A stretch of 64,000 nt of DNA from Podarcis muralis (taxonomy: Eukaryota): contig NC_135668.1 in the NCBI RefSeq assembly GCF_964188315.1, positions 30,504,001-30,568,000 on the forward strand, read 5' to 3'. The notes beneath the pieces were generated by a model. That model was not told the DNA's origin. It saw only the letters and a list, made by a program, of their open reading frames with translations, and searched no databases. This document shows positions 50,846-54,833 of this stretch, piece by piece. Every line of letters starts with the position of its first letter. Position 1 is the first letter of the stretch. Position numbers and translations under genes: made by a program.

Positions 50846-53800
50846 GCCTGTGTTAGTGTACTCTTTAATATAGTTCAGTCCAGGTATGAGGTGGGAGCCT
50901 TGCAAAGCTTGTGCTGCCTGCCAAGTCAGTTCCTGGAAGGGGTAGAGGCATAGGGGGCCCAATGAGCTATTCCTTCCAAATCAACTTTAAGGGTGCCAAG
51001 CACAACTCCCTTGGACCTCTGTGTGTGAAATTTGGCAGGCTTCATCCCCTGAAAAGGGGATGCTAAGCTCACAGATTCCACCCATTTCTGCCTGAAAGGA
51101 GAAAAGGGTTAATAATTTGGTGCTCCCCTAGTATTGTTTTCTGTTATCAGCACCCCAATTTACAATAGCCCGATATTGGAAACAAAAGTGTAATTAAAGG
51201 CACTTCAAGGATAGACACTTTTGGTGATGTTGGCTTCCTTTCTTTTCCTTTATAAACGAGACGGAAGATACTTTTATTCCACTTTCAACACAGGAATCTC
51301 TGTGGAGAGGCTACTTGAATTGATAATACATAACTTATTGCATGTGCACTATGTACTACGTATGGAATTTAATAAGAATGGACCACTGGACAAGTTAATG
51401 TAGTTGTGTGTTCTTGTCTTTATTTAAATGAGAAACAATAAAAATCATTGGGGTGACTTCAGAAAGAGGTATTGTCTACAGCAGAGAATTGCACTGAATG
51501 AAGTGAGAGGCCTGCATATTAATTTGATGTCTAGCTGACTGGAAATGCAAGACCCCAGCAATGTGAGAGAAATGCTGTCGCTCACTCAAAGGGGCCGGAT
51601 GATGCACAAATGTTCCTGTGGGTGGGGTCGGAATATTTCACAAATCCAGAAGGTTTACTAAATCGAGAAATAAAGAGCCCACAATGTGGAGCCCAGAACA
51701 CACAGGGATGGCAACACATTGCTAATAATAAACAGGTGCCCTACCCGATCCACCCAGCTGTTTTCCAACTTATCGGGATGCTCCAATCACTCCAGGTGTT
51801 CCCGAGGAAATAATTTTTCTGGCGCACTTTAGCAAAGTGGATCGTTGCTGGCATGAGACTCCCTATGGCGATTTTAAGTTGCATGTCCGTCGTCATGCGT
51901 TTGCGTGCCTTTGGAGGGGGGGGGGGAACCGAGAAGCAAACAGGTTTACATTATGTGGTCCTTCCCACACCACAGGAAAACACTGGGAGGGGGTTCTTCT
52001 GGTGAGTGGAATTCTTCTCTTTCTCAACTTTCTATGGAAGGAGATAATTTTGGCATATGGTAGAAAATTGCTTTTGGACTCTTATGTACCAATGGACAAG
52101 GGAATGAAAGCTTTGTAGATGAAGTCAAAGGGCTTGAGACCAAATGACAGAAGGCTCCAGGGCAGAAGAATCTCCTTCCCTTCCTCCTGAGCCTGGCCAT
52201 TTCTCACCTGAGGGGTGGGGGGGACAGCCACAGCCAGGGACCTAGGGCTGGGCTCATTCCTCCATCCAGACAAGGAAGAAAAGATGCAATTCAGCCTAGC
52301 CAAAGAACTAGGAGTGTGTGGAACAGTAATGGGGCGGTGAAAGAGGCCTGGAAGGCTGCATCTGCCACCCCTTCCCCTAGGTTCTGTGATCCAAAGGAAA
52401 GCAATGGCTTGGGGCTGGTGGCCCTGATCTCAAGCCAGTCTACTCTGAGAAGTCATAAAAGCCAACCCACTGTTCTTGTGTGTGCCCCACTTGTGAGGGG
52501 CATAAAATCATCTGCCAAATATATTGTTATAGATTTAGGATAAACCCTAAAAATTAAGAAATGCTACTCCTGTAGTGATGGCTGAAAACCACATATACTC
52601 CCCTTTTCTCAAATGCAGCTCTGCACACTGGTCTGCATAGGCAACTAGGGCAATCTGCCTGTCTATTTTGCCACAAAGGGCAGCTGAACATATGTATTGT
52701 TGTGTGCATATGGTGGTGGTGGTGGTGGGGGGCAATGACTTTCACTAGAACAAATGGATTCTGTGAATGGTCCTTGATAGACATCAGAGAGACCAATGAA
52801 GGCACTTTCTCATGCAGAGCTGCCCAAAGAAAGTGTCATGGAAGGGCAGGGAAGATGCCATGTCAACCAGCATGAGGCAGAGCAGGGGGGTGGGGAGAGG
52901 GGTATTCTGAAACATCAACCTCTGCTCAGGACACATAAGGTCTCCCCCCGCCCCCCCCCCAGTCTATGTGGTTGTTTTAGTATTTTTAATTTTTGTTTTA
53001 ATGGCATTGTTTTAACATGGATGAGCTTACCACCCTGGGTTCCCTTTGGGAGGAAGGGTGGGATATAAATGTAATTAACTGATTAACAATAATAAATTTG
53101 CAGCACTATTCCAGGTGATTGTAGAGAGAGGAGCATGCTGGGAAGGTGTGCCTACCTTGTCCTCCAGCATGCCTTCTTGCCCAAAGGCAACTTCATAGTC
53201 TGTTTCCGAATTTTTATGGAGAATGCTCTCTTCATTATAGCCATCTTCCCAGGTGAGGATGTATCCGCCATCCCCCATCTTAAGTTTCAGGTTGACAGGC
53301 TGTCGGGGTTTCACTGCATTCGGGAAGAAGACAACAAAGAGAAGGATGTGGGGAGGCAAAAGGGGCCCCTGCTCGCCTCTCAGGGAAGACAACACGGGCC
53401 TCTGCTTTGTAAGGAAGGGCTGGTCAAAGCGGCAGACTTTTCACCCTGGAGGACAGACCTCAACCTCTCCAAGTTCTCTCCAGAACTGGAGTATCCCCCT
53501 CCAGGCACCTGAAGAAGGGGGCTCTCCATTGCCAAGGTTTCTGCCACAATAAACCTGCCACTGTTTAAGGTGGTGACTTTGCATAACGTACTAAGGCGGA
53601 TGCAGGAGTGGCTAAGGAAGGTCTCTCAGCATTGATTGGTGCTAATCGTGAAGACAAATGATCTGTGCCCACCACACTTGTATTCTGCTACTCTTGTCTT
53701 GTTCTTCAGATCAGCCTCTAAGGATGCACAAGAAGGATCTTGCAGACCAAAGGATCCCTTACCAATTTTACGAAGGTCCTCAATCTTCGTCTTCCAGATC

Positions 53801-54833
53801 TTTTTCCCATTGGCCTCCAGCGAGAAACGATACTTGAAATTATTCCGTACTTCAGACCGAATGGTGCAAGTACACTTGGGGGTCACATCCAGGCCTCTCT
53901 TGTTCTTAGGAGAACACTCCCATGATTTCTTGGAACAATGGCAAGACTTAAAAGATGTTTTCAAAGTAGACAACACTCGGATTATTTCTGCCACAGCCTT
54001 GATTTGGGAAAGCTCAGCCCAAGTGAGAGAGGGGCTTTGCAATGCCTCCAGCTGCACCAGGCTGTGGATTCCCCAGGAAAAGTTGCAAGCGTGCCAGACG
54101 ACATAAATCTGTGCACCTTGGAAGTTCTCCAACCACAAGTGGTCCAGTGAAAAGTAGAATGAGAAACCCTTTGGATTCTGCGTTTCTTATTCTGAGTTTG
54201 GAAAACTCACAGGGGTAAGGAGGGTACCACCAGCCCCCAAAACACCCAACAGAGGAAAGAGGAGATCGGGTGGCAGTTCTCACATTTCATAGCATGACCT
54301 ACTTTTGGCCACTGAATCGATTATTCGCTGCAACACGCAGGAGGAACTTCTTGGGGCAGTCGGTAGAGGCGTCCACTTCCCAGGAACAACCCACTTCGGA
54401 GTCATAGTCTGTGAAGCAACGTGGCTGGATGTCCTTTGAGGATATGGCTAGAAAGAAACAGAAGAGTTTGCTTGAGTGCCAGACTGACACCAGCTGTTGT
54501 GCGTCATCTCCAGATTTTCAGAGGAAAGCAGTGTAGGAATGTTTTACTCAATGCAACTTACATATTCAGAGGAGGCCTAGCCAGAAAGGGCCTCTGCAAA
54601 GTCACACTTTGGCCCTCCAAGACTCCACTGCAGAAAGGGATAGAATCTCTGCTCCTGTTTTTCAGGCAGAGCCGTAATTACAGGGGGGCTAGCCAGGTTT
54701 TTTTGCCCTGAGTGAAGCCTCCAAATGGGTGCCATTGAGGCTCTTAACCTGTGTGTGTGTGTGTGTGTGTGCCAAGCTGTGTCTTTGACAAGGGTGAAAT
54801 AAAGCCTAGATCTGAGTCTGGCCGAGGGGGACC

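Follow-up and report, generated by a model that had tools for sequence, protein, structure and literature searches.

An IL4R duplicate in lacertid lizards with exons more divergent than introns: probable joint action of patchy gene conversion and positive selection

Why should a gene duplicate differ from its parent more in the exons than in the introns? This question is raised by a 64-kb stretch of the Podarcis muralis genome (GCF_964188315.1, NC_135668.1, positions 30,504,001 to 30,568,000; here called the window), whose minus strand carries a full IL4R gene encoding the alpha chain of the interleukin-4 receptor, IL-4R-alpha (copy A, 38.6-47.7 kb) and, upstream of it, a partial duplicate (copy B, 51.7-58.3 kb). 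Self-comparison of the window shows the tandem duplication as 41335-47789 aligned with 51457-58390, at 71-86% identity in blocks. Copy B has orthologues in Podarcis raffonei (locus L001), Lacerta agilis (L002) and Zootoca vivipara (L003), and is represented in P. muralis by a 239-residue protein (P0012) whose exon 2-5 part differs from that of the window at five residues. A preliminary description of the locus offered diversifying selection or intron-restricted gene conversion as alternatives. The analysis reported here found that both operate and that either one alone falls short: the pattern is probably the joint product of patchy conversion between A and B, which resets introns, and of a selected, fast-evolving B ectodomain.

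The contrast between exons and introns exceeds chance, and the counts made by hand in the preliminary description were reproduced throughout. Exon 5, which holds the WSxWS motif, is identical between the copies at 95 of 151 positions (41661-41811 vs 51758-51908; 56 differences, no gaps); 19 of 50 amino acids are common to both, and four of these 19 codons carry a synonymous difference (ACC/ACG, GCA/GCT, CGG/CGC and GAC/GAT). The adjoining intron is identical at 105 of 107 positions (41831-41937 vs 51932-52038), and the intron on the other side of the exon, put at about 85% by eye, has 15/99 and 13/99 mismatches (85-87% identity). Approximately 26 of 52 amino acids agree in exon 4 (D2a), where about 25 had been counted. 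Exon 3 (D1b) begins with 23 residues on which the copies agree, followed by 32 with 14 differences, and the D1a region ends with ATTSTVYGPG in A and AANNRFSGQK in B; within the window the D1a comparison is limited to the 3' half, as exon 2 of copy A lies partly in a gap of N. Over exons 2-5 in four species, the Kimura two-parameter distance (K80) between A and B is 0.30-0.32 for exons vs 0.16-0.19 for alignable introns. Counted per 80-column window, intron mismatch between the copies is strongly uneven (chi-square P=7.5e-9, 2.3e-9 and 1.6e-21); the same count among A orthologues gives no sign of heterogeneity (P=0.13).

The Nei-Gojobori method (NG86) gives a dS of 0.28-0.33 between A and B and a dN/dS ratio (omega) of about 1. 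At 4-fold degenerate sites the proportion of differences (p) is 0.19-0.25 vs 0.14-0.17 in introns (Fisher P 0.28, 0.047 and 0.71), and exon 5, which has the highest synonymous divergence, has the most similar stretches of intron on its two sides. Where alignable introns are least similar, mismatch is 22-29%, matching the 4-fold divergence of the exons, from which it follows that a good part of the introns was reset after the duplication.

Conversion between A and B was traced in an eight-sequence alignment containing both copies of the four species, and it is real, recurrent and made up of lineage-specific tracts. The homogenised 3' end of intron 4 of copy B (51932..52038, minus strand) is the 105/107 piece; in a 100-column window at this place the mismatch between the copies is 4-5% in three species and 12% in Zootoca. 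A tract specific to Podarcis spans the 3' end of intron 2 and the 5' part of exon 3 (53847..54083 on the B side, minus strand; A partner at about 44089-44337). Here, over the end of the intron and the first ~82 nt of exon 3, mismatches number 4/88 and 5/100 in both Podarcis species and 11-16 in Lacerta and Zootoca (14/96 and 14/99 in Lacerta), the letters in Podarcis A are of B type, and the 23 identical residues of exon 3 are explained by the same tract. Downstream of exon 5, A and B of P. raffonei differ at 0/100 positions, compared with 15/99 in the window and 8-15 in the other species; P. raffonei B and window B differ there at 11/99. In Zootoca, copy B is A-like from the 3' end of exon 3 into the beginning of intron 3 (3/97 and 3/91 mismatches vs about 20 in the others). 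Permutation of run lengths gave p<0.0005 for P. raffonei and about 0.002 for Zootoca, and exon 3 was the only B exon in which long A-like runs were found.

Trees of individual segments agree with this patchwork. P. raffonei B joins its own A only in segment S8 and Zootoca B joins its own A only in S2, while S1, which covers the Podarcis tract, does so partly; most intron segments group by orthologue, with A and B apart, and not by species. The internal branch separating A from B measures about 0.03 (0.028) in S6, the 3' part of intron 4 that includes the 105/107 piece, 0.185 in exon 4 with its flank, and 0.375 in exon 5. The conversion proposed in the preliminary description is thereby borne out, but its restriction to introns is not, since tracts enter exon 3 both in Podarcis (first ~82 nt) and in Zootoca (3' end).

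Comparison of copy B with its own orthologues is the cleanest test of exon acceleration because it avoids comparing paralogues. Among these pairs the ratio of exon to intron K80 is 1.6-2.6 (P. raffonei-L. agilis, 0.158 vs 0.078), against 0.76-1.18 for copy A. The proportion of nonsynonymous differences (pN) reaches 0.145 vs an intron p of 0.074, a ratio of 1.96 (Fisher P=2e-6); across B orthologue pairs the ratio is 1.9-2.0 (P=2e-6 and 4e-6), and in copy A, the control, it is 0.65-1.19. The neutral references used in place of NG86 dS, namely 4-fold sites and introns, both stand at 0.07-0.08 in B orthologues, the same as in copy A; over all pairs they range over 0.035-0.125 and 0.017-0.080, respectively, with no pair significantly different.

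Codon models led to the same result. In our own implementation of the Goldman-Yang model (GY94), applied to ten sequences with converted stretches masked, omega was 0.73 in the A clade, 1.70 in the B clade and 1.72 on the stem; omega_B=1 was rejected (p=0.009), as was omega_A=omega_B (p=0.011). Four codon-frequency models of GY94 all rejected omega=1 (p 0.006-0.011), omega_B being 1.70-1.88 across GY94 models. Clade values obtained independently with IQ-TREE, 0.88 (A) and 1.87 (B), agree with our own. Relative-rate counts against five outgroups assign 20-28 derived residues to B vs 5-7 to A, a 4-5-fold asymmetry. These results support positive selection on the B ectodomain, where amino-acid substitutions have accumulated about twice as fast as neutral change, so the diversifying selection suggested in the preliminary description stands and is placed on copy B. 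The outcome that would have spoken for an old duplicate with homogenised introns, a branch omega at or below 1 together with conversion tracts in introns only, is not what was found.

The rapid change occurs on a conserved scaffold. Exons 2-5 are open and end at the same stop in window B, in P. raffonei, in L. agilis and in one complete Zootoca copy, and the retained exons 2, 3 and 5 of the positional B copy of Zootoca are open too; where retained, the exons are open in six of the six B-type copies examined. Under neutrality the probability of no stop would be 0.02 along the Podarcis-Lacerta path and 1.6e-4 over the whole clade. Exon indels measure 3, 6 and 12 nt, and the Zootoca copy B1, with indels of -3, -12, -9 and -6, is still open; intron indels are divisible by three in only 4/22 and 1/8 cases. 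All six cysteine columns are kept in every A and B copy, and WSDWS is present in all. The open frame, the in-frame indels and the retention of the cysteines and of WSxWS thus indicate that copy B was kept as a foldable protein.

Ligand contacts were considered next to this scaffold, using lizard residues aligned to the IL-4-contact loops of human IL-4R-alpha; apart from three hot spots, the residues assigned to the loops are those we take to form them. The hot spots are Y13, D72 and Y183 (PMC10033668). Differences between A and B affect 62% of loop positions vs 37% elsewhere (odds ratio, OR, 2.8; P=0.012), which upholds the dense change in ligand-contact loops noted in the preliminary description. 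The enrichment is not special to B, however: loop positions vary at 62% vs 36% within B (P=0.007) and at 44% vs 17% within A (OR 3.9, P=0.001), and the margin by which B exceeds A is no smaller outside the loops. Since the loops are enriched in A as well and the excess of B extends beyond them, they are general hot spots of the receptor and carry no B-specific signature.

Regarding its structure, copy B comprises five exons on the minus strand: exon 1 (58254..58336, 83 nt) with the start codon and signal peptide; exon 2 (D1a; 54303..54447, 145 nt), with AG/GT boundaries, an open frame and a 3' end that codes for the loop AANNRFSGQK; exon 3 (D1b; 53763..53929); exon 4 (D2a; 53156..53313, 158 nt, three more than in A); and exon 5 (D2b with WSDWS; 51741..51908), of which 51758-51908 is homologous to exon 5 of A. 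The donor of exon 5 is lost, so that the frame reads through six codons past the exon end to a TAG at 51741-51743 (WKTAGWIG*). Donor loss and TAG are common to window B, P. raffonei, L. agilis and three Zootoca copies, and no match to a transmembrane or cytoplasmic exon was found after copy B between 48.0 and 51.7 kb. Motifs resembling polyadenylation signals (AATAAA at 51424 and 51278, ATTAAA at 51373; 51278..51429, minus strand) lie in sequence homologous to intron 5 of A and are candidates by motif only. The IL4Ra_N domain (Pfam PF09238) is recognised in P0012 with 56.3 bits against a curated cut-off of 22.1, and also in the B-type genes of the P. raffonei and Zootoca loci. Owing to the loss of the exon-5 donor, copy B would encode an anchor-less and presumably secreted IL-4R-alpha ectodomain, which, judging from this anatomy, may bind an IL-4/IL-13-type ligand as a decoy or carrier; co-evolution with the ligand or with an antagonist may drive its change, we infer.

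An origin of exon 5 of copy B from another receptor gene was also considered and rejected: its flanks are homologous to A, 19/50 residues are common with A, and the exon occurs in all B copies. Intron 1 of copy B contains very high-copy repeats at 56200-56600 and 57200-57600, with a summed depth of 10^5-10^7 in DNA contigs and of hundreds in RNA reads. The loose-end consensus of these repeats resembles a tRNA-derived short interspersed element (SINE), and one repeat is found upstream of both Zootoca B-type promoters as well. A long (CA)n microsatellite at 54740-54920 in the same intron cuts reads.

How old is the duplicate? Identity between window A and P. raffonei A is 93-96%, between window B and P. 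raffonei B 95.6% and between window B and Lacerta B 84-91%, with A vs B at 72-86%. Copy B turned up in these lacertids alone; it is absent from Elgaria, where a single IL4R directly adjoins NSMCE1. A protein tree unites lacertid A and B in one clade with a support of 100, apart from the IL4R of anguids, snakes and agamids, and gives B a stem (0.39) five times longer than that of A (0.076). The occurrence of B in three genera, the single Elgaria gene and the lacertid clade together place the duplication, as read from these sequences, before the Podarcis/Lacerta/Zootoca split and within the lineage leading to lacertids. Rhineura, the closest outgroup, was kept outside the outgroup set, its ectodomain exons lying beyond the locus retrieved (L004).

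Copy number has also changed beyond this event. The Zootoca locus is expanded, ~100 kb of it containing at least three copies of type B and two of type A: L003 carries the positional B, which is without exon 4, followed by A, and L006, ~40-70 kb further, carries a complete B-type copy (883-6518), an A-type cytoplasmic exon (7578-8656), a B-type copy without exon 4 and both its flanking introns (13484-18792; protein P0013) and a second A-type gene (22492-28600+). Per codon, the divergence of Zootoca B vs B1 is about six times that of A vs A2. In Rhineura floridana the cytoplasmic exon of IL4R is present twice, 8 kb apart and with identical tblastn scores (L004, 6394-8003 and 14366-15977), reflecting either an independent duplication or an assembly artefact.

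A sequence of events that would account for these data starts with a partial tandem duplication of IL4R before the Podarcis/Lacerta/Zootoca split, in which B would have kept the promoter, the signal-peptide exon and four ectodomain exons and lost the exon-5 donor. Recurrent short-tract conversion between A and B then reset divergence over large parts of the introns and over a portion of exon 3, each lineage being affected at other times, and lowered intron divergence locally to 0-5%, and positive selection would have carried the B ectodomain to about twice the neutral rate.

Several observations weigh against this account. Without the Zootoca B copy omega_B falls to 1.55 (p=0.11). The stem omega of ~1.7 has p=0.07 (0.068), on a stem that is unpolarised between its A and B sides. 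NG86 omega is 0.9-1.1 between A and B and 0.9-1.3 among B orthologues, exceeding 1 only by maximum likelihood or with introns as the neutral reference; codons with multiple hits inflate dS and so keep the NG86 ratios near 1. Conversion from other B-type copies, if it went undetected, could moreover look like substitution. Copy B of the window itself carries two candidate inactivating lesions. Its exon 1 has 83 nt where the frame needs 82 (phase 2 vs phase 1 in A and in Lacerta B), and, read from the ATG, the frame reaches a stop in exon 2; P0012 fits this exon-1 DNA once a C is removed from the run 58309-58312. The acceptor of exon 3 (53930-53931) is AA (ttccaa|GAAATC), where P. raffonei has ttccag, L. 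agilis gtccag and all other copies AG; splicing at the AG that follows one base later would alter the reading frame. The positional B of Zootoca lacks exon 4. Two RNA-seq runs from the same organism (tissue unspecified) yielded no B-specific RNA: depth over the B-specific exon 4 is about 0, and all reads on the parts common to both copies (B exons 2 and 3) are of A type.

The evidence on these lesions is itself uneven. A 101-nt word search recovered the exon-1 stretch in full in at least 12 samples of the same organism from four studies, four words having been sampled with their positions unplaced, so that the extra C is backed only indirectly. DNA contigs of run X14 cover the exon 3 acceptor with an A-type contig only, which neither confirms nor refutes the AA. 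A-type reads are placed on B exons 2 and 3 because the N gap takes up part of exon 2 of A and conversion has affected exon 3; the gap (44978-45177) is consequently a trap for estimates of B expression, with RNA and DNA reads of A landing on B exon 2. Run X1 was rejected as RNA evidence, as it covers introns and consists of DNA of another organism. An intact open frame including exon 1 is present in P0012 and in Lacerta B. Copy B may thus be recently dead in this genome and dying in some lineages; the clade-wide signal stands regardless.

Could the same facts arise without selection on B? An old duplicate of which the introns alone were homogenised, as in the L/M opsins, would retain the true age of the pair in its exons, selection having removed converted exons, and would require no positive selection. 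The conversion tracts are real, NG86 omega between A and B is close to 1 with a dS above the mean intron K of 0.16-0.19, 4-fold sites are nominally more divergent than introns, and the exon with the highest synonymous divergence sits between the most similar intron pieces, all as this explanation would have it. Primate L/M opsins are, like A and B, tandem paralogues more divergent in exons than in introns, with conversion mostly in introns (PMC3213168). A study of gibbons found the opsin introns to cluster by species, and purifying selection to maintain the difference in exons (PMC3213168); in IL4R, by contrast, intron segments group mostly by orthologue, omega of B exceeds 1, and B exons outrun B introns two-fold between orthologues, where 4-fold sites do not. 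This last excess, as well as the 4-5-fold asymmetry in derived residues, would be left unexplained, and the difference between 4-fold sites and introns is weak (P 0.05-0.7). We therefore regard an old duplicate without positive selection as unlikely.

Still less probable is that copy B is a decaying, unprocessed pseudogene in which fast amino-acid change reflects relaxed constraint. The frameshift and the AA acceptor in the window, the Zootoca B copies without exon 4, the lack of B-specific RNA in the two runs and an NG86 omega near 1 would all suit such decay. Neutral decay cannot, however, lift exons above the intron rate (1.9-2.0, P=2e-6) or omega above 1 (p=0.009), and it does not predict six B-type copies with exons 2-5 open where retained, the same stop and in-frame indels only (no-stop P 1.6e-4), with cysteines and WSDWS intact; the lesions, in turn, are confined to some lineages (the window and Zootoca). 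Exon-limited import from further, unsampled B-type paralogues, by hidden paralogy or conversion, might also inflate exon divergence between B orthologues, and the locus is dynamic enough to suggest it, given the Zootoca expansion and the doubled cytoplasmic exon of Rhineura. Imported tracts would nevertheless raise synonymous and intron divergence, and both remain at 0.07-0.08 as in A; no third IL4R copy occurs in the 64-kb window, and long A-like runs are missing from B exons other than exon 3. To this explanation we give as little credence as to the pseudogene. Conversion acting jointly with selection on the B ectodomain accounts best for the whole pattern.

The coding parts of snake-venom PLA2 genes evolve faster than their introns, a pattern with which the locus was likened in the preliminary description. 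The likeness holds among B orthologues, where coding sequence outpaces introns and nonsynonymous divergence lies above the neutral proxy. It differs in that the fast part is a cytokine-receptor ectodomain, rather than a secreted toxin, in one of two paralogues, that the excess is about 2-fold, and that part of the contrast between A and B is due to conversion. Mammals produce soluble IL-4R-alpha by alternative splicing or shedding, and possess gene-encoded decoy receptors in IL-13R-alpha-2 and IL-22BP. Copy B resembles these in that its predicted product is an ectodomain without anchor, which ends six codons after WSxWS and could bind cytokine in solution; unlike mammalian soluble IL-4R-alpha, B is a separate gene that arose by partial tandem duplication and donor loss, and its soluble form is a prediction. 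The ligand is also fast-evolving in mammals, where diversifying selection has been described at the receptor-binding epitopes of IL-4 (PMC3017759). The same ligand-receptor interface is fast in lizards, as the contact loops are enriched for change, but here it is the receptor side that changes, in both A and B, with an excess over neutrality only in B. No report of IL4R duplicates in reptiles was found in the literature.

More tentatively, and with odds that we place below even, copy B may be a lacertid gene-encoded secreted IL-4R-alpha in conflict either with the IL-4/IL-13 of the animal itself, which evolve fast, or with a mimic or antagonist from a parasite or virus, a gene with exons at twice the neutral rate that has been repeatedly duplicated, patched by conversion out of the signalling receptor gene, and lost. 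If true, this conflict would be the first example of venom-like accelerated evolution in a cytokine receptor. The IL-4/IL-13 type-2 axis forms the chief immune defence against helminths. In mammals, its ligand is known to evolve under conflict (PMC3017759). A lineage-specific, anchor-less copy with faster than neutral evolution would amount to a natural experiment on how signalling receptors give rise to soluble decoys or carriers and how these follow a moving ligand. As A and B stand side by side with the same introns, conversion and positive selection become separable, which makes the locus a compact and well-controlled case. It also calls for caution: comparison of paralogues alone overstates selection and simple dN/dS understates it. 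With a pairwise NG86 ratio of ~1 between A and B, paralogue dN/dS alone would not have revealed the selection on B.

The exons of copy A were mapped by placing the P. raffonei IL-4 receptor alpha protein P0001 back onto the window; the large exon (38649-39788) has 94% identity to it. Seven coding exons were obtained on the minus strand: exon 1 (47642..47735), exon 2 (44901..45045, from 44978 upward in the N gap of 200 N, which covers its 5' 68 nt), exon 3 (44005..44171), exon 4 (42822..42976), exon 5 with WSDWS and an intact GT donor (41661..41811), the transmembrane exon 6 (40175..40274) and exon 7 with box 1 and the cytoplasmic tail (38646..39798, start approximate). The last two have no counterpart in B. 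Copy A thus has the transmembrane segment, box 1 and cytoplasmic tail of the signalling IL-4R-alpha chain, and its ectodomain (P0001:25-237, the query) matches human IL-4R-alpha structure chains over the full length (E ~1e-18).

With respect to the surroundings, NSMCE1 lies upstream of B and an IL21R-like gene (19.8-23.2 kb) downstream of A, the gene order of other vertebrates (cf. the Elgaria locus). Beyond the IL21R-like gene, exons of a third class I cytokine receptor with the motif YRSQWSPWS are found at 10316-12000 (minus strand); the one exon searched gave no Pfam match. Between the IL21R-like gene and IL4R, the stretch 24007-25250 (plus strand) contains intronless open frames with an RRM_1 domain, HTATSF1-like by eye and probably a retrocopy.

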